A DNA stretch of 63,447 bases, the filler included, from Salisapilia sapeloensis CBS 127946 (lineage: Eukaryota; Protista; Oomycota), in the NCBI GenBank assembly GCA_023334545.1. It is 12 parts of 12 records of this genome, joined end to end, with 100 filler letters (N's around TTAATTAATTAA, not from the genome) between each part and the next. Parts side by side here need not be neighbours in the genome. Positions count along the whole stretch, not along the records: positions 16,025 to 40,706 come from JAADVB010000259.1; 11 more parts are not named here. One strand, written 5' to 3'. Position 1 is the stretch's first letter; each line of letters begins with the position of its first letter. A model generated the notes under the pieces. The model worked only from the letters and a program-made list of their open reading frames with translations. It was not told where the DNA came from and did not search any database. Both the position numbers and the translations under genes were made by a program. Shown here piece after piece: positions 22,369-33,504 of the stretch.

Positions 22369-23899
22369 ATGCATGGACGAGCAGCGCAAGAGCATGCGCT
22401 TCGACAGGTACTGGCGCTTGGGGAGTGCAAGACAGAGATGCCTGCTCCATTGACAATCGTGTATGGAGGTGCTTCCACTGGCAAGTCTCTGTGCATGCAA
22501 GCTTTGGTATGGCACGACCGAGAGATCGTGGGAACCGTCGTGGATGCTGCTGGCATCTTCACGCCATCGGATTTCTATCGGGAAGTCTTGGCACAGATAG
22601 CAGATAGCCAAGGCAATAAATCGGAGAGTACCGAGCAAGATGAAGATGAACTTGTGATTGAAAAGCAGCCTCTTAAGACCAAGGAAGAGCATACCGATAA
22701 TGGGAGTAGCATGAATCTCAATTTTCTTAGTTTCGTGAAAGCGCTCGACCGAACGATGAAGCTGTGCCAGCAAAAGAAACTCTACCTGGTCGTCGATCAA
22801 GCTGACCGACTGCTCGATCGAAAACTAGCTTCATTGCTTACTTGCGTATGCTCCATTGGCACGCATCTCGCTTATACCAATGTACGCCTTCTACCTCACA
22901 TGAAATAAAGAGCATGGAGCTCATGTAGATAAAACTATAGATATTCAAGGAAGAGGTATGGAGTATCCACGTCGTGCTTGTTATGAGAGCCACGTCTCTC
23001 GAAATGAACCACGTCATCGCTCCTTTTACGCCATTATACATCTACTTTCCTCCATACACGAATGGTAACTTGGTATCCATTTGTATACCTGACAATGGTA
23101 ACCTCATCATCTATTGCGAGTAGAAGATATCACGAATATCCTAGTGGAGCACTTCGAGATGGAACATGTCGAACCGACATTCCGGCAATGGACGACGTAT
23201 CTCTTCGACCTCCTTCCAAGTGCTCGACTCGATTGGCTCGACTTTCGCCAGCAAGTGCAACAGCTACTACCGGACTTTGAAGCCTTTCTCGCACAAGACA
23301 CGTCCAATACGACTGTATCGTTGCAGCGATCTGCTAACGACAGTGTCTCCAAACTAATGAAGAAGCAGCGACGTCATCTCTTCGGCTTCGAGAAGCGTCA
23401 AGACAATTTCGATGGGACGCAAGAGACTTCCATCGCTGAGCTCAGCCACAGCAGTTTGCTACTAGTCGTAGCAGGCTACTTGGCATCTTTCAACCCGCAA
23501 GACACAGACGATGCATTCCTATCGTCCACAGGTGGACGCAAGCAAAAGCGGCGGAAGAAGGCGACGACAGCGGCGCCCACGACTTCCCAGAAGATGGTCA
23601 TCAACCAGCTTCTCATCGGCCCCAAACCTTTTCCATTGCAACGACTACTTGCTATCTACGACAACATCCGGCAAGAGGCTGCTGCTGACTTGGATGAAGA
23701 CGATCCGGATAGTACGACACCTCGAGAAGAGATTTTCACGCACCTCGCGACACTCATGCGCATGCAGCTCTTCCAACGTACGTCCGCAACGAACAGTCTC
23801 GACGACATTCGCTTCCGTTGCCTCGCGACTGCAAACTTTGTCCATGACGTTGCACGAACACTAGAGTTCCCATTGGACACGTACTTGAACCCAAGATGA
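22369..23899 (+). CDS. ORC5: Origin recognition complex subunit 5, 3 exons
   Basis: Walker A YGGASTGKS, LYLVVDQADRL, YFPPYT, and the ORC5_C motifs AGYLASFNP and QLLIGPKPFPLQRLLAIY. Confidence 0.88.
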
Positions 23900-23968
23900 A
23901 TGAATGATATTAGTATACTACGCTCGGTTACTTAGCCCACTCTCCTTCCCATCGACGATGAAAGTTGC

Positions 23969-26538
23969 TTATAGCAATTGCAGAGGTAACGAATCCTCAT
24001 TCTGAAGGACACTCTCCAAAACGCTACTCGCTTGCTTTAAGAACGGATGATCCAATGCCTCTTGCGCTGTTATCCGATTCTCCGTATCCTTCTCCATCAT
24101 CCGAGCAATCTACAATACATACGATCAGTCCGCTATCTTTTACATACACGAGAGATACACGTACGAGATCCTTTGCACGTGGAGAGATGGCGATCCATTC
24201 CGGATCTTCAAATTCGTACTCGACCGACTTGTTCATACGAATGAGCTCTTCGTCGTTCACGCCAAAGAACGGTTCGTACCCGCATAGCATCGTGTACGCC
24301 ACGACACCGACGGAAAACATGTCGACACCACCAGGATACGCCTCTCCTTTTCCTGCAAGTAGGATCTCTGGTGCGACAAACCCAGGCGTACCGCATCGAC
24401 CTTTAAGCTTCCCATCCGGTTGGATGAATGCTGCCATGCCAAAGTCCGCAATCTTAAGCAACGAGTAGCATAAGAAGTGGTCTGTCGACTCGACAAAGTG
24501 AAGCGCGAGATTCGATAGCTTAATGTCTCGATGCGCAACGCCGTTCTGCTGACAATACCCGACTGCTTGGACGAGACTTGCGATCAGATATGACGCTCGG
24601 TTTTCATCTACCGCCGTGTTTTGAACAATTTCGTCATGTAAATCACCAGAATGCATGAGCTCGAGCTCAAGAACAAGTAACTGACGTGTCTCAAAGAGAG
24701 ACAAGAGGCGTATGACAGGACAGTATCCTCCTTCTGCACGCACAGTCAAGACCGCTTGCGTTAGTATTTCACGAGCTACCGTATCTGGACGCTCCGTCTC
24801 CCTAGCGACTTGTTTCCAAAACGCGTCTTTATCCATAATCTTTAAAGCAGACTGCTTCCGAGTGCCTTGTCGACGCTGTGCTTGTTTTACGACAGAGAAC
24901 CGACCTCTTCCTAGCTCCGTATCACCAAAGTCAGTCACGAACAGATCTTCGATCGACAGCGTCGACGCAGACGACAGAGCTCGGAACCACTCTCCTGCTT
25001 GTGTCTGCGTCTCGAGCTGCATCCAACATTCATTGTGCAGCGCGCCACCATCCATAGAGGCTGTGCGGTAGTACTTAAGAGCGAATTCGAGAGGAGAGCT
25101 ATTCGGTTGGAAGTGGACAACGGATGCATCCGTGACATTAGCAAATCCAATCGGTCGACTACTCTCTTTTTCGTCTAAGTACTCCCATAGACAATTACGA
25201 GAGAGCGTGACGAATCGTTTGCTCCATTTGCGACCAGGCTGCTTGAGCCATGCCCACGCATGCATCCCGTCATTCTGCTTCTGAGCTTCTCTCAATGCCG
25301 TGAAGACATCGGATGGGAGGGACGTCGCCAAGCACGGGACAAACCATGAGGATGCATCCCACTTTGGATCTTCCGGAGAAGATGGAACAGGCGTCAGGAC
25401 TGCAGTTGTGTCATGGATATCCGCGACACTGTCCTCTGCAATGGAGTTCATGCCGAAGGACGAGGCACTACTAAAGCTCGTGGAACTGCTAGTACGCTGG
25501 AAAGCTTGTGCTCCATGGAGACTCATCTCATCTCCTAGGAATGCATGGGCACTGTTACCAGTGTTATCGTTATGGATCGTCGTGAAGCACTTGCGTAAAG
25601 CAGTGTCAACGGTGGATCCACTCGCACTAAGAGACGTTTCGAGTAATGGACAATTGATCATGATATGGTCTCCACCACAATTTGCACACACGGATGCTCG
25701 TTTCGGACTTTTATAATATGCAGCTTGAGGTAATTGCAATGGAGAAGGTCCAGTAACACTGGATGAAGTAGAGGAAGAAACGCTCTCGGTTAGGGTCGGA
25801 GACATCGTCTTAGTGTCCTCTTCTTTGGTTTTTGAAGGCGTCTCGTCCTCAGAACTTGTCGTGTCCGAGTGACCGGCATGCACATCAGTCAAGTTGAGCG
25901 AGTCGCGACGATCAATATTGCGTATACTACATGATGAATGAGCATTTGTAGGTAGAGATAAAGATAGAGAGAGGATCTTACCTTATATCTCCGCTCTCAT
26001 GAAGACTATTCATCATGAGACGCTGGATTAAAACGTCCATCTGCACTTCCCACGGCTTGACCTTGACATCCATCGATTGGGACGTCGTGCTTCCATCCGT
26101 CGCTCGCGGTGGAGCAGGAGACTTGGTCTCCTTATCAGACCGATCATCAGCGCTTGATGCAGCCTCCAACTCTGGTTCTTGCCCAGCGCTACCGTCGGCA
26201 CCGGCAGTTACGCGCACGGCCGTATGTGTCGCGAGATTTCCTTTTTTATGAATAAGTTTAAAGCAGCTCACGCAGTATGTATCATGGCAGCATCCTCGAC
26301 AACTAAGCTGAGCATATCGTAGCTCGCAGTAGACACAAAGCGATTGTCCATGTCTGATCGAAGCGTGCGACGGTTCTATCGTCTCCGTCTCTTCACCGCC
26401 ACGCTTTTGCTGCATGAACCATACTCTCCAGCTCGCATTCTCCAGTCGCTCCGCTTCACTCACAAACCGTCGCATAGTCGAGAATGACTGCCACGACTTG
26501 CGGACAGCCGTCTCGAGGTCCACACCCGTCGCCTGCAT
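23969..26538 (-). CDS. Multidomain CAMK-group Ser/Thr kinase (DUF1752-like motif, B-box, Zn-knuckle-like, PH, kinase), 3 exons
   Basis: Introns 25927-25981 (AG|GTAAGA) and 24110-24164 join ORFs 25978..26538 and 24024..25892 in frame. Kinase motifs LGRGRFSVV, ALKIMDK, HRDIKLSN, DFG, CGTPGFVAPE and RITAQEALDHPF. Confidence 0.9.
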
Positions 26539-26616
26539 CCTTCTCGCGACTTTTTCTGTCGGTCACTTGATGCTTGTCCAAACACTTGTGACGGACGCGA
26601 CGTGGTCGGCACGACG

Positions 26617-27392
26617 ATGGCCAAGGGCAAGCGATATGATCGGCAGCAGCAGACTGGCAAGGCAAGGGCGGACAAGTCACAAGAGGAAGATGTTATCCCG
26701 CCTCTACTTGACTTTAAACGTGAATATGGACACGGCTTGACGGCCGAGTTACTATATGGCGATTTGATCTACGCCGTGAAGAACTTTTTAAGCATGAACG
26801 AATGTGCACGCGTACGCAAGTATGCTGACCAAGAAGGCTTTGAACGAGTTACGCAACGTGCTTCTCGAGATTATGCCTTTCGTGATAATGATAGGATCTT
26901 GAGAAGACTGCCTGCCGTCGCAGAACTGCTGTGGGAACGCATTAAGCCGTTAGTCCCGGAGGAATATGAAGGCATGCGTGCTGTTGGATTGAATCCAGCG
27001 CTACGTTTCTACCGGTATACTGGTATCGTAAGAGGAAATGGAGTTTTATTGACGCATGCGATAGGTATCGAGCCGGACAGAGCTTTGGGTGTCACGTGGA
27101 CCAGAGCGACGTGGATCCAGTGACAGGCTACCACAGTCGCTTCACCGTCCTCGTCTATCTGAACGACGCGGAGGACTCGGATCTCAAGGGCGGGAGCACA
27201 GTCTTCTACGGCGAACCAACGAGTCGCAAGGCCAAGCAGAAACCTGTTGTGCTAGATGTCGCTCCAAAGACCGGCGCAGCACTTATCCATGGCCATGGCG
27301 ACCAATGTCTCCTGCACGAAGGAGCTGCAGTCTCCCAAGGCGCCAAGTACTTACTCCGTACAGACGTCATGTACACCAATACAAGCGGATAG
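26617..27392 (+). CDS. 2OG-Fe(II) oxygenase, prolyl 4-hydroxylase-like, 2 exons
   Basis: LNPALRFYR|YRAGQSFGCHVD (HxD), TVLVYLN, GGSTVF, LHEG and KYLLRTDVMY; intron 27015-27064. Confidence 0.88.
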
Positions 27393-27427
27393 TAGAAAAA
27401 TGATTTGTCTGTATTCTGCGTGTATGC

Positions 27428-30400
27428 TTAGGACCGAGTACTCGCTAGTAGCTCCCTTAGTCGTCTCGCAATCGCATGCAGGAACTTGTTACCCTATCGA
27501 ATACAACATGATTAGATTCCATCATCTACTAGATCAAATGATAAGATAAATAAGGTACCTCATGTGGCTTAAGTGTGCGCAATGCATCTGCAAGTGGATG
27601 TTGAACGGCATGCACCTTATCTTTCTCCAAGCCAGGAACGTAGTGGGCAAAGTGGAGCATCAGGACGATAGATAGATTCTCAATCGCAAACGTCATGCTG
27701 TCCGTATGATACTCCACAATGTTTCGCCAAGCAAGTAGCTTGTCGCTACGCTCGTGCTTGGCACACCCTCGACCTGCCGCAAGACGATCGAGTAGAAGCT
27801 GTCCACTCTCCAACGCCGTCGTGAACATCTGCAGTCGAGCTGTTGCGGCATCTAACGTCGGTGACTGTCTCCACAATGGCGTCGTCGCAGACTCGAACGC
27901 TTGCAAGTCTCTCGAAGCCAACGACGGGATGCTCCATTCGTCATTCCGCGCAGACGTCGATAGAGACATGAGTGGACTGCTCCCTTCGCCTTCATCCAGC
28001 ACACGCATGACACGATTGGCACAAAAGGCAGCAGCATTGCAGACGATCATGCGAGAAGCGTACACCTTGTCTTCATCAAACGCCGACAGCTCGAGCAACG
28101 ACGCACTGTCTTGCGCATTGCCGTCGCTTAGGATCTGCACACAGTCCGGACACGAGAACCGATGGGCACGACTCGCCTGCTGCTCCAATGCATTTGCCGG
28201 ATGCACCTTGAGCCACCACACTCCATCATCATCACGCATATCCTGATCGACTGGAAGAGGTTCTGATCCGTAGAAGAGAAGGACATGCAGCACCGACTGC
28301 GCCAATCGTTCCCACTTGGTTTCTGGAAGCACTTGGACGCACAAGTCGTCGAACTGACCGACGTACCGCAGGACGAACGTCACGTACGAGATCTCGCGGA
28401 GAAGCTCGAGACTCTGAGGCGTGCCTTCCTCTAGCTTTAGTGCTCCAGCGAACAGCTTCCGTCTGCTCGAGATGAGATGGAGTGTCTGGTCTGCAAAGGC
28501 ACGATGCTGCGGCAAGGACGAACCCATGGCACTCAGCAGACGGAGGACAGGTAGCCACTTGCGACTGTACATGGCTTCTAGACGCTGGAAGGTGGCGCGA
28601 GACGTCTCCTCTAGCTGTGGTGCATGCAGTCGAGGGCGATGCGTAGGTAAGTTCTTAGCGTTCGTGAGCACACGCAAGAGGTTGCTTTCCAGTAGGATGC
28701 GTGCGCCTTCTTTCGAAGCAGCGACACGAGAGAAGAGCGAGAGGAAACATTCGTACATGGTACCGACGGTCGAGCTGTCTACTCCTGGCGGCAGCACATT
28801 GTCCCTCCCTTCTCCAGCGTCTTCCTTAGCGAGCTCCGCATCTAGTTCACACAGACGCTGGAAGACATCGACAAAGTGGGCTAAGAATCCCTTCTCGCGT
28901 AGCGATCGAAGAACGACAGCGCCTTGCTCGAATGACGCAATGGACTCGAGACTCGAGATAGCTAGCGCCATGCTCAGCGGATCGTCTCCATCACTCGCAT
29001 CACGGCAGATCTGATCCACGACTTGCGTCGACAGCGCGTTCAGCCTCTTACCGACAGCAGGAGCTCCTGGCGCGAGCAACTCGAACGAATCGCTCGTCTG
29101 GCTTGCAGGCAGCATGTGCAGCACATTCATGACGCACGTGTACAGCATCGCTCGGGCGTGGCGTGCTGCAACTGGGTTTCCAGCCGCCGTGTGTGCATTG
29201 CAAATGGCTCGGAAGACACGTTCCAAGGTATCCACAAGCTTTTGATCCCTTGTCTCGGCGTCTTCCTGAGGTGGTTGACGCATCTCAAAGAGCATCGTAA
29301 GCGTGATACGTGCTGCAATCTCAAACAACTGCGCTGAGATACCTGCCTTAGTCGTCAGCTTTTGCAAAAGAGTCGAGACAAAGCCAAAGAGCAATTCGCC
29401 TCGGACATCAGCTTGGACCATCGTCCTCTGTTCATTCGAAGGAGACAAATAGTCGACTACAAGTACTTCTGCCAAGTCACCAAGCGCTCGAAGCGCATGG
29501 CTTTCCGCTGCCACGCGTTCAGAGTAGAGATTCCAATGGACAGCCCAGCGTAGTAGCTGCTCGACATTGGAGCTCCCGACAGCAGATTGAGAGACACCGG
29601 AACGCATTCGCTTGGCACTTGAGGCCGGTAAAAAGTCGAGAGCATTCGGAGCACTAGCTTCCATCGCTTGGAGTTCACGACAGAACGTCTCGACATCAAT
29701 ACGTAGCCACTTGTAATATCCTCTCGTGACCTCACCAGCAGCTTTCTCTGCGATCGACACGACCTGCTTGTCTTCCGGTACGTCCGGTGGGAAGAATTCA
29801 AACGCGCTTTCGTCTAGCAGCCGACTAATAAGCGTCTTCTCACCTTCTTTCTCAAACAAAAGTTCTAGGACGCTCGCCATGGAAGGAGTGACGGGAGCTC
29901 GTTTGAGCAAACCGACGTGTAGGTACACTGCGAGACCTTTGAGGAACCACCCGCGCATGTTAAGCGACGCAATGACTTCCGACGGACTGCGACGACGACC
30001 GATACGCATCAAAGCGCTGAAGAGTTCCATCTGACACGCAAAGTAGTCATACGCACGACTCTCAAGCACCGTCGTCACGACCTCAGAAGAGAACTCACTA
30101 GCTAACAAAAGGTAGAGGACGTGGTAACAACGTTCCGCAAGCTCCGGGTACTCGAGGACAAAGTCTGCGTTCGAAACGAGCGTAATGATCGCATCGAGAC
30201 CGGACTTGATGTACCCCCCGTCTTGATTCGACCGCATGTGCAGCACACCTAAGAGCAAGTGCGCAACGTTGGGCGCCGATCGGTTCAGATTGTCTAGCAG
30301 GAGATCTAAGATAGCGCTGCGGACACTTGGTCGAGGCGTCCGACGTTCTGACAGTTCGAATTGAGCTGACGATGTCGCTGGATCCAGTCGCTTGCGCTTA

Positions 30401-33400
30401 CGTGTCGATGGTATGGTGATGTCACCAGCATCGAGACTGTCTACACTAGCAGCACGACCTTTTCCAAGTTGTTCATCCACTTCGATCGAGTCGTCATCGG
30501 CACTAAGCAGACGCTGCATGTAGCCAAGCACGATCGGTGTCGCGGCACCACTGTCCACGAGGAGATCGACTAGTTCCTGTCCTGTCAAACGACTACTGAC
30601 CATGCGCATGATTACGGCAGACAAGTGCGGAATGTACGATGACTTGGTGTACTGGATGTACATGGCCATATTGACAAAGTCCGAGCGGTAGCGACACAAG
30701 ATCGAGTGCAGTAACTCCACTTGCAGCCGATGCGAAGGCTGGCGACACAAGTCCCAGTTGACAAACTTCTGGTCGTTCTCGAGCACCAAGACCATGATCT
30801 CCATCGCATGCTGCACGCACCTTTCCCGCAAGAGCCCGACAGTCGTCGTCTCTAGGCGGTGCTTGGCTCGCCTACGCGATGGCACATGACCAGCATAGTT
30901 AAGTGCACCATACGTCGCCTCAGTCGTCTTCTTGACAATGTCCAGACAGTAGACGAACGCATGTTCCAGGTGGACTTCTAGCGACGTGTTCTCTAGACCT
31001 TCCGCACCAGCATCACTGGACAGAATGAGCAATAACTTCGTCAGCAACGGACTGCTGGACAGTATGCGAGCTAAGAGCTGATGAGAAAGACTCGATTCGT
31101 CGGTCGAGTTATCACCGTTACGCAGAACTTGCTTGAAGATCGACAAGGCACGACTCGCGAGTGCCCACTTCTCTTCTTCAAAGTCATACTTGCGCTGATC
31201 AAACTGGAGGAAGATACGGTCAACTAGGAACTCAAAGTAGACTTGAATCGCAGCCACTTTGCCATCTCCTTCGAACGCTCGCCAGGCGTGAGGAGAAGCA
31301 AAGAGCTCCGTCAAGAGTGCTAAGAAGCCTTTTGTCGCAGGATACGTTCGACTTGCACTCTCATAGTGCTCTAACTCGTAGCTTAGATCTTCTCGACCGT
31401 ATATAGATACGTCTGCGGACGTCCGAAGGATCTGGAGAGCATCTACGTGTTTCCATAGGAACGGAGCGATCTCCGGTACGCGTGCAAAGACGGCCAGTGT
31501 CTTCATGAGAGAACCTTTTAGAGCACTCGGAATACGACATTGCAATAGCGACACGAATGTCGGGACAGGTACCCAGTCGTGGTTGTGGAAGAAGATCAGA
31601 GCGAGTTGATGATCGGCCACGACTGCCTGGATGACTGCTTGAATCGCTTGTAGCGCCTCTAGCTCCTTTGGACGGATGAACTTTTGACCTGGATTGGACG
31701 TCGCATGCGCTGTGAGTGCGCCGGACAAGTCTCCAAACTCCTGCGGCTTCTCAGCGTCCGTCAATAGACGCTGGTACTTGATCATGACAGCAAAGTAATG
31801 GTCCCAGCAGAGGATTGTCGGGTTCTGCTTCACGTGCTGGAAAGCCAATTGGGCACAGTCTGGACCTCTAGCAGCAGCTGCCACGAGCTCCATATACGAA
31901 GGCAAGCACGCAGGGTTCTCATGTGCTGCGTCCCGACAGATGATTAAAAAGTTATGACAACGACCAGAGTACCCTTCGACACCGACAAAGCTCGAGTCAT
32001 CTGTCGAAGACACTTCTTCCATATCAGAACGTTGGGAAGTCATGTCTTCAACACGCCAAAAGGCACGTGCAAAGGACGAATCGAGACTGCAGAGTGCGAT
32101 GGCATAGTCCATCAAGTTCTCGAGGCAGTCTCCTGACTTATCTTCATCGTCTTCACTCATGGCAGACCGGTCCGCGACAGTCGGTACATTCGTCACGAGT
32201 TTCGAAGAGTACTTGACAAAGAGCAATTCGAGACTACGTTCGTGCATGGCGAACAAGACAGGATCACGATCACGATCGGGAAGGTGCTTGAGGAAGACGT
32301 CTGTCAAGGTCGAAAAAGCACGGTCTTTAATGGCTTTCTTCACAATTCGAGGCGCTTCATCTGCCTCCGTGAAGCACGAGTTGTCCGAGAGACTGTTACC
32401 AGTGGATGCACCGAGGAAGGCTGCCCAGCACAGTCTCGCAACGCTCTGGAAGTTCGATTGTTCCCATTCTTCCTTATGGAAGACAACATGGAGGTCAGCG
32501 ACGGTGGAAGAATGATCCGAGTCGAATAAGACGCGACCGGACACTCTGTTCCCTGTGTTTCGATCCGTTTTCTCGCCGTCCGGAAGCAATACTTGCAGCA
32601 GTGCCACCTGCAAAGACGCTAACGCACGTAGCGTATACGATACGAGCTCAATGTCGTTCTTAGGGGAGGCTCCGGCGACAGATGTGCTGTCGGATAGCTG
32701 CGAGAAGGAAGACAAGTTGAGGATATGCGGAGAGACCTTGGCGACGGAAGCTCCGAGACGGTCTGAAAGCTTGTGCAGAGATTTACCCAGCGACACGGTC
32801 TCCTGTGGCGTCACCTTGTAGCTCGATGCGATCAATACGACGCAATCTGCAATCAACGCATGCCAGTAGCTAGCCAATTTTTTGGCACTCGCTGTCTGGA
32901 CGAGCTTGGGCAGTTGGTTCTCATAGCTGCTTAGGAGGTTCGTCAATAGGCCCTGGTCTAAGAGTTTATTGGAAAACGTAGTGATGAATTCAAGACGATC
33001 GACAGGCAGCGTCGTCTCGAGACGTAGCTTGAGCAAGTCCTTTACAATGAGCAATTTATACTCGAGTTCCGAGACTAGAATGTGACGTGCTGCTGCTGGG
33101 ATATCCTCTGCGATGGCACCATCTCCCAACTGATCGACACGTTCGAGCCACTGTCGACGCCCGGCATCGCTCGCCAGTAGCCATAGTTCGCAGCTCTTCT
33201 TTTCATTGTACTGCCACTCGTCACTGAGTTGAATGATCGCCTCCTGCACTCGTGAAGGGACGTCGACCGACTTTCCTTTCACAGTCACGCGGTTTTGCTG
33301 CAATGCCGATCGCTCTTGTGCCTGTGGTGGATCAAAGGACAGGGGAGCGACGAGAGATCCGATTGCAGCCTCGAGCGACTCGACAAAAGTCTCGGCGTCA

Positions 33401-33504
33401 TCGTCGTTCATCGATTGGGCGGCATAGGACCGTAGCTCTTGATACAACGATCGGTAGGTAAGCGAAGGCGCAGTTTCAAGCGCAAGCGTCGGCGCGTCCG
33501 CCAT
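27428..33504 (-). CDS. NUP205: Nuclear pore scaffold protein Nup205/Nup192
   Basis: About 2000-aa helical protein with LLQCRIPSALKGSLMKTLAVFA, ELEHYESASRTYPATKGFLALL and LNMRGWFLK. Intron 27494-27558 gives the terminal exon GNKFLHAIARRLRELLASTRS*. Confidence 0.85.

Follow-up and report, generated by a model that had tools for sequence, protein, structure and literature searches.

In the oomycete Salisapilia sapeloensis CBS 127946, we found one expressed three-exon gene for a Ser/Thr protein kinase which carries, from its N-terminus on, a PF08550 (DUF1752) helix, a B-box, a disordered linker, a conserved helix, a zinc-knuckle-like motif, a conserved block, a PH domain and the kinase domain. 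The window, that is, the whole stretch of DNA that was analysed, comprises 63,447 nucleotides (nt); all coordinates count along this joined stretch, in which the kinase locus stems from record JAADVB010000259.1. The gene is a further ortholog of a catalogued kinase family, that of PITG_06259 from Phytophthora infestans, and the lead that our analysis adds is a link between DUF1752 and the MCRIII helix of animal ChREBP, which binds 14-3-3. The gene model, the family and the architecture, taken together, we regard as practically certain. The explanation that fits the observations best overall is that of a PITG_06259-family kinase docked on 14-3-3 via its PF08550 helix, to which we would give an even chance.

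Gene model and oomycete family

The evidence for a single gene comes from transcripts. Of the sampled words of the gene, 93% were present in four sequencing runs (two samples, one study), as is to be expected when nothing but the two introns is absent. Three of the four runs were compared as contigs against positions 22800-27600, and each contained one contig, starting at 26566/26589, that covers exons 1, 2 and 3 and omits exactly 25927-25981 and 24110-24164. The same contigs also lack the GT..AG introns of three neighbouring genes, each on the appropriate strand; thus they are derived from complementary DNA, though the run record does not state so. The original prediction had used the first of the two introns to fuse an upstream open reading frame in frame to the kinase. 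This is confirmed by the transcript contigs, including the reading frame over junction 25982/25926, and instead of two separate genes the three runs contain a single spliced contig each.

The codon split by intron 1 (AG before it, T after it) encodes Ser, and the protein reads GDI-S-IRNID at this point. All orthologs compared (28/28) have GD(I/V)-(S/G)-x-x-N(I/L) over the first exon junction, mostly as GDISV(H/R)NID. An in-frame TGA is located nine codons 5' of the kinase ATG, and the codon count over the three exons gives a protein of 819 residues.

The three exons were searched and modelled separately. Exon 2 finds full-length oomycete proteins of 860-950 amino acids (aa) with the same Pfam set (48-57% identity, E 1e-187 to 1e-160) in Pythium oligandrum, Lagenidium giganteum, many Phytophthora, Peronospora, Hyaloperonospora, Bremia, Plasmopara, Peronosclerospora and Globisporangium. 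A search with the first 115 residues of the Lagenidium ortholog finds the same proteins and in addition those of Aphanomyces, Achlya, Thraustotheca, Saprolegnia and Albugo candida; this word-based search returned oomycete kinases only and could not reach fungal or Mondo proteins. Exon 1 is 45-53% identical to the orthologs and 38% identical to the Albugo candida N-terminus. Beyond the orthologs, matches fall to generic kinases with about 30% identity.

A profile of exon 1, searched exhaustively against 1.84 billion representative sequences, gave 17 matches at E<=1e-29, and every named one is from an oomycete. Among the best 150 matches of that search, the combination of PF08550 and B-box is found in oomycete kinases only; those below the 17 orthologs are generic B-box proteins, and relatives with PF08550 alone are not visible there. 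Look-alikes in the ESM Atlas were fungal PF08550 clusters only, below the 0.9 level, and a search of the Atlas with PF08550 excluded returned nothing. In a tree of the exon-2 equivalents, Salisapilia falls within the non-saprolegnian clade, where its branch is long and its position unresolved. Judged by these sequence comparisons, the kinase family is pan-oomycete (Peronosporales and Saprolegniales) and lineage-restricted, and it is apparently single-copy. Since every domain is kept across the oomycete orthologs, chance is excluded for the domain set.

The P. infestans ortholog PITG_06259 (XP_002998416 / D0N4G1), whose kinase-domain sequence in the supplement of PMC3019232 matches the ortholog from our searches, was classed as CAMK/CAMK1 and noted with a PH domain only in the kinome of Judelson and Ah-Fong (2010, PMC3019232). 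It is the nearest relative of PITG_08008, an EF-hand-PH kinase; in the accessory-domain table of that study, DUF1752 is not listed and none of the CAMK kinases has a B-box (PMC3019232). The array values for PITG_06259, normalised per gene, suggest that its expression falls strongly in zoospores, provided that the columns are ordered as in the paper (hyphae, sporangia, zoospores). We found no further paper naming PITG_06259 and none on PF08550/DUF1752 in oomycetes or on kinases; therefore the family is public and automatically annotated, while its accessory-domain stack and its function are undescribed in the literature. The original prediction had expected a lineage-specific architecture, one not familiar to it from the literature, and would have counted a common, already described stramenopile family as a refutation. 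The architecture is indeed restricted to one lineage, but this lineage consists of all oomycetes, and a pan-oomycete family was already catalogued, with PITG_06259 listed as CAMK1 plus PH, which in part amounts to that refutation; what stays new are the PF08550 and B-box parts, which are in no paper that we found.

Compared to PITG_06259 and the other oomycete orthologs, domain order and exon-junction residues are the same, whereas the Salisapilia protein is shorter because its linkers are shorter. Public models of the orthologs are often wrong: some divide the gene into a PF08550 part and a kinase part, and one fuses it to a neighbour. The Aphanomyces euteiches annotation has two overlapping calls on one strand, of 187 aa (PF08550) and 647 aa (kinase); for Pythium insidiosum and Aphanomyces astaci, the N-terminus stands as a short model of its own, and in Albugo candida the gene is joined to an adjacent NIF-domain gene. 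Counts of domain architectures in databases will thus under-report the family.

The PF08550 helix and the other domains

All four domains named in the original prediction were recovered, namely the N-terminal DUF1752/PF08550 motif, a B-box-like domain (as a borderline match), a PH domain and an intact CAMK kinase. Its knuckle-like motif is present with an invariant C/C/H/C set, but with the spacing of eIF3g and not that of a canonical CCHC knuckle.

PF08550 (GATA_AreA) matches aa 15-42 over the full model (profile positions 1-28/28) with 36.4 bits against a cut-off of 20.9; in a six-frame search of the genome, it scores 39.1 bits at the kinase gene, which is the single PF08550 match in the 22.4-Mb Salisapilia assembly. 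The motif is matched in 29/29 sequences of the ortholog alignment, among which the helix is near-invariant, and in an AlphaFold2 (AF2) model of exon 1, built with this 29-sequence alignment, it lies inside a predicted helix at aa 6-47 with a predicted local distance difference test score (pLDDT) of 84-89.

In a search against all PDB sequences, the exon-1 profile matches ChREBP at the helix (5F74 chain B, E 8e-4), and a profile of the 39-residue motif finds three ChREBP entries (E 7e-4 to 1.3e-3), the next best match having an E value of 0.5. The alpha2/MCRIII helix of ChREBP is the only significant match, and thus among solved structures the one that the PF08550 motif appears to resemble most. 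With an offset of 90, W16, F19, R31, L32, N34, A35, W37, R38, W40 and Q43 of the Salisapilia protein align to W106, F109, R121, L122, N124, A125, W127, R128, W130 and Q133 of ChREBP. Eight residues of MCRIII are invariant in all Mondo proteins (W106, F109, R121, L122, N123, N124, W127 and R128; McFerrin and Atchley, PMC3323566), and seven of these are identical in the Salisapilia helix, the eighth, N123, being a Glu; W130 matches too.

The 14-3-3 site of ChREBP is a helix at residues 116-135, in which the mutations R128A and W130A abolish binding and N123A leaves it intact (PMC3323566). Crystal structures show that this helix sits in the 14-3-3 groove without phosphorylation, that R128 bridges 14-3-3 E182 and a phosphate, adenosine monophosphate or phosphonate in the K/R/R/Y pocket, and that W127 lines the composite pocket (PMC7414219, PMC11873037). 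The kinase shares with ChREBP/MondoA MCRIII (alpha2 helix, residues 117-137; PDB 4GNT, 5F74, 6YGJ) the pattern W..F(x11)RL.NA.WR.W..Q with identical spacing in a predicted helix, and the equivalents of R128, W130 and W127 are kept; in contrast to ChREBP and MondoA, the Salisapilia protein is a kinase, P104 is absent and N123 is replaced. No other Mondo region (MCR I, II, IV, V) and no bHLH-zipper was detected in the kinase with Pfam, and the likeness is confined to MCRIII.

The motif is also known from fungi. Yeast Reg1 and Reg2, PP1 subunits that switch off Snf1/AMPK, carry DUF1752 (Reg1 residues 173-204), and new 2-deoxyglucose-resistant missense alleles fall in the DUF1752 of Reg1 (PMC12520357). 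The region of Reg1 that binds Bmh (14-3-3), residues 187-232, overlaps DUF1752 (PMC10847541), and Gat1, likewise a PF08550 protein, also binds Bmh1/2. Thus, two fungal PF08550 hosts, Reg1 and Gat1, are 14-3-3 clients. The Salisapilia kinase has in common with AreA/Gat1 and Reg1/Reg2 the full 28-position PF08550 match above threshold and its N-terminal placement, and differs from the fungal proteins in that its motif precedes a B-box and is joined to a kinase, and in lacking a PP1-binding RVxF context. A GATA zinc finger was not matched in any exon (Pfam), and the protein is not an AreA/Gat1-type regulator by this measure. The label 'fungal-type AreA', as used in the original prediction, agrees with the PF08550 match but is too narrow, since Reg1 and Reg2 carry the motif and the only significant structure match is the animal protein ChREBP.

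One canonical 14-3-3 gene was found in the 22.4-Mb assembly (C180:52072-52731), a count that is a lower bound. It encodes an intact phosphate pocket (RRASWR, HRYLAEF) and an intact groove (YYEIL, TLIMQLL), and the gene is intron-less over the domain. At 22.4 Mb in 1365 contigs, the assembly is much smaller than is usual in oomycetes and may therefore be incomplete.

The B-box match at aa 67-106 (PF22586, ANCHR-like) reaches 27.2 bits against a cut-off of 27.0 in Salisapilia and is found at E<=0.01 in 29/29 of the ortholog alignment. Its eight Cys/His ligands have type 1 spacing (C-x2-C-x8-C-x2-C-x5-C-x2-C-x4-H-x7-H), and C68, C71, C80, C83, C84, H85, C89, C92, H97 and H105 are invariant in the 29 sequences. 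The exon-1 profile also matches the ZFYVE19 B-box in the PDB (E 2e-4), and AF2 models the domain at aa 67-109 with pLDDT 73-89. Foldseek returned no match for the exon-1 model at E<=0.001; the weak matches (E 0.04-0.7) were the ZZ domain of CPEB1, the B-box of CONSTANS (root mean square deviation 1.4-1.5 Å over 45 columns), ZFYVE19 and PML B1, all of them B-box or ZZ cross-brace fingers. The type 1 Cys/His spacing is the same as in ANCHR/ZFYVE19 (PF22586; PDB 2D8V), which differs from the Salisapilia kinase by its FYVE domain and MIM motifs. Further downstream in the exon-1 model, aa 119-157 form the disordered linker and aa 162-179 an amphipathic helix with pLDDT of about 80.

The knuckle-like motif, CANCGGDHIMINC, has the spacing CX2CX3HX4C, and C80, C83, H87 and C92 (exon-2 numbering) are invariant in 29 sequences. 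This is the spacing of the N-terminal CCHC motif of eIF3g (PF12353), a protein whose RRM is not present in the Salisapilia kinase. The Pfam match to PF12353 is weak in Salisapilia (E 0.15), and 6 of the 29 orthologs match at E<=0.01, the best at 6.4e-13. A canonical CCHC knuckle (CX2CX4HX4C) is ruled out by the spacing and by the lack of any zf-CCHC match. The motif occurs in three copies in the Aphanomyces euteiches model and in one copy in Salisapilia and the Peronosporales orthologs; for other Saprolegniales orthologs, precomputed matches to the eIF3g family (PF12353) exist. In the conserved block behind it, LRKCFTTIHNDN..NS.HAFLGDE.S..G, which has no Pfam match, 14 positions are invariant among the 29 oomycete sequences, and both knuckle and block have pLDDT <50 in the AF2 model of exon 2. 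Within the block, L-R-K-x-F-T reads as a putative basophilic site that would fit a CAMK-type consensus.

The PH domain scores 33.1 bits against a cut-off of 25.1 and is matched in 23/29 of the ortholog alignment (Pfam). AF2 predicts seven strands and a helix (307-321) with pLDDT mostly above 85 and up to 96, and models the PH domain and the kinase N-lobe as one confident unit that is continuous over a short junction. R237 is invariant in the 29 sequences, and a Lys is present in beta1. By comparison with Akt1, the equivalent of R25 is presumably kept, whereas that of R23 is presumably Ser or Cys. The placement of the PH domain directly N-terminal to the catalytic domain is shared with Akt/PKB and PITG_08008; the Salisapilia kinase belongs to the CAMK and not the AGC group, and it has neither a hydrophobic-motif tail nor EF-hands.

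The kinase domain (Pkinase, 149.5 bits) continues into exon 3 and is matched in 29/29 of the ortholog alignment. In exon-2 numbering (full length is obtained by adding 186), the G-loop GRGRFS, K362, E386, HRD 465-467, N472, DFG 494-496 and APE are found without exception and do not vary among the orthologs. The activation loop, CGTPGFVAPE with T513, we take to be that of CaMKI/IV. CaMKIV and CaMKI are also the nearest solved kinases (E 1e-36 to 1e-34, PDB search). From the end of the kinase domain to the stop codon there are only 22 residues, which have no Pfam match, and hence no calmodulin-binding autoinhibitory tail. By its residues, the kinase is catalytically intact and CAMK1-like. The C-lobe is poor in the AF2 model of exon 2, probably due to the cut at the exon boundary and the shallow alignment.

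Table 1. Features of the Salisapilia sapeloensis kinase gene; positions along the window
Feature	Position	Strand	Remarks
Kinase coding sequence	26538..23969	minus	three exons, two 55-nt GT..AG introns
Exon 1	25982..26538	minus	codons 1-185 + 2 nt; ATG at 26538
PF08550/DUF1752 motif, proposed 14-3-3 docking helix	26413..26496	minus	aa 15-42; Pfam and AF2 helix
B-box type 1-like / ANCHR-like zinc-binding domain	26221..26340	minus	aa 67-106; Pfam, PDB, Foldseek
Conserved amphipathic helix KPWE.QMD.L.QRLM.NS...GDI	25984..26061	minus	aa 160-185; alignment and AF2
Intron 1	25927..25981	minus	55 nt, GTAAGA..ATGTAG; exact gap in transcript contigs
Exon 2	24165..25926	minus	1 nt finishing Ser codon, then 587 codons
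eIF3g-type CX2CX3HX4C zinc-knuckle-like motif	25650..25688	minus	exon-2 aa 80-92
Conserved block LRKCFTTIHNDN..NS.HAFLGDE.S..G	25512..25613	minus	exon-2 aa 105-138; follows knuckle in domain order
PH domain	24963..25241	minus	Pfam: exon-2 aa 229-321; the fold starts at about aa 198
Protein kinase domain, exon-2 part	24165..24920	minus	exon-2 aa 336-587; Pfam and invariant columns
Intron 2	24110..24164	minus	55 nt, GTACGT..TTGTAG, inside kinase domain; exact gap in transcript contigs
Exon 3	23969..24109	minus	46 codons + TAA stop
Protein kinase domain, exon-3 part (subdomain XI)	24038..24109	minus	Pkinase profile positions 240-263

Proposed 14-3-3 docking and other explanations

We tentatively propose that the PF08550 helix docks the kinase on 14-3-3, a mechanism to which we assign somewhat less than an even chance. 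Where the original prediction had put forward nutrient or lipid sensing, which stays a conjecture, our evidence points to docking on 14-3-3 as the concrete mechanism. The helix would be the counterpart of the MCRIII/alpha2 helix of the animal glucose sensors ChREBP and MondoA and would bind the organism's apparently single 14-3-3 protein without a need for phosphorylation. W37, R38 and W40 would act as W127, R128 and W130 do in ChREBP, and R38 could bridge a phosphate-bearing ligand in the phosphate pocket of 14-3-3. Docking might set the localisation of the kinase, its dimeric arrangement or its activity. The PH domain, which abuts the N-lobe in the model, might supply membrane or lipid input or autoinhibition, and the B-box might supply a further protein contact or self-association. 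Activation would probably also need phosphorylation of the CaMKI-type activation-loop Thr (CGTPGFVAPE) by an upstream kinase.

Several points weigh against this proposal. The ChREBP match is short, with about 21-22 bits, and moderately significant (E about 1e-3), and a W/R-rich amphipathic helix could have arisen by convergence. I120 of ChREBP, a residue of the ligand pocket, aligns to a position that is variable in the kinase family. The exon-1 model has a predicted template modelling score (pTM) of 0.33, so that the arrangement of its parts relative to each other is not predicted, and the AF2 models carry no information on partners. As to the lipid input, only part of the basic phosphoinositide-binding signature of the beta1-beta2 loop seems to be present in the PH domain. 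14-3-3 proteins have hundreds of clients, and therefore the associations of Reg1 and Gat1 are weak if taken alone. Moreover, Reg1 missense mutants in and around DUF1752 keep their steady-state 14-3-3 co-immunoprecipitation (PMC12520357).

It might also be possible that the PF08550 helix regulates the kinase from within the molecule, for instance as an autoinhibitory helix packing on the PH-kinase unit or the B-box, and that the likeness to ChREBP is convergent. The helix is near-invariant, the usual C-terminal autoinhibitory segment is missing, so that inhibition must arise elsewhere, and AF2 joins PH domain and N-lobe with confidence into a single unit. However, in the exon-1 model, with its low pTM, the helix is not predicted to pack on the B-box, and a partner acting in trans is favoured by the presence of the same motif in unrelated fungal proteins that have no kinase or PH domain (GATA factors, Reg1), to which this partner would be common. 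We consider this explanation unlikely.

A rather unlikely alternative is that the N-terminus is a generic assembly module, in which the B-box (with the helix) oligomerises and thereby lets the kinase trans-autophosphorylate, and PF08550 is without a specific partner. Self-association is a frequent role of B-box type 1 and ZZ-like folds; PML B1-box multimers are among the nearest folds (Foldseek), and all zinc ligands of the B-box are invariant. An assembly module would, however, explain neither why the W/R face of the helix is so extremely conserved nor why fungal PF08550 occurs without a B-box.

A conventional Ca2+/calmodulin-dependent kinase is very unlikely, although this is what the database name 'calcium/calmodulin-dependent protein kinase, putative' suggests and is in line with the nearest solved kinases CaMKIV and CaMKI, the CaMKI-type loop and the CAMK1 class (PMC3019232). 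Behind the catalytic domain, the 22 residues leave no autoinhibitory or calmodulin-binding segment, and no EF-hand is present; a canonical calmodulin kinase is rejected for want of the calmodulin-binding tail.

Scarcely credible, finally, are two separate genes (a PF08550 and B-box protein next to a PH-kinase), as the two Aphanomyces euteiches calls and the short models of Pythium insidiosum and Aphanomyces astaci would have it, or a gain of the motif from fungi by horizontal transfer, for which the mostly fungal annotation of PF08550 could be cited: the former is refuted at the Salisapilia locus by the spliced contigs joining exons 1-3 in three runs, the junction residues are kept in 28 full-length orthologs and the overlapping A. 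euteiches calls look like an annotation artefact, whereas transfer finds no support, the motif being 28 residues long, having a metazoan look-alike in ChREBP and standing beside a B-box in no fungal protein among the best 150 matches from 1.84 billion representatives.

There is also a wider reading, which we regard as doubtful. PF08550/DUF1752 and Mondo MCRIII might be one ancient eukaryotic module, a phosphorylation-independent 14-3-3 docking helix tunable by a phosphate-bearing metabolite, and the sole oomycete copy would then sit on a PH-CAMK kinase that is gated by metabolite and 14-3-3.

Neighbouring genes and implications

Convergent to the kinase gene on the plus strand is an ORC5 gene (22369-23899; AAA_16; ORC5_C 1.3e-35), with GT..AG introns at 22882-22940 and 23064-23122, the second of which is retained in the contig of one run. 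Its stop codon is located 70 nt from the kinase stop, and the contigs merge both genes, meaning that the 3' ends overlap and not that the two form one transcript. On the other side, a divergent gene for a 2OG-Fe(II) oxygenase-like protein (26543-27392, plus strand, intron 27014-27063) has a PF13640 match with E 1.2e-4, which is below the cut-off. Contigs of this gene start at 26543-26597 and those of the kinase at 26566-26589; thus the 5' ends meet or overlap, which points to a very compact bidirectional promoter. A Nup192/Nup205 nucleoporin gene (PF11894, E 4e-88) is encoded on the minus strand at 27529-33504; its first open reading frame comprises 1991 aa, and its intron at 27493-27557 is confirmed by contigs. 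Runs of a second organism (2025) contain short contigs that are about 95-97% identical to kinase and ORC5 exons, indicating a close relative of the source species.

The kinase is present in every oomycete, including major pathogens of crops and fish, and as a lineage-restricted, apparently single-copy family with an undescribed domain stack it lends itself well to functional genetics in Phytophthora. If the relation of DUF1752 to the ChREBP helix is confirmed, this uncharacterised domain would gain a function. DUF1752 is part of Reg1, a regulator of AMPK in yeast whose new missense alleles cluster at this domain, and of the fungal nitrogen regulators AreA and Gat1. The link would also tie Reg1, AreA and Gat1 mechanistically to glucose sensing in animals. 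Should the module indeed be ancient, it would gate nutrient-responsive transcription factors and a PP1 subunit in fungi and animals, and in oomycetes it may gate this kinase.

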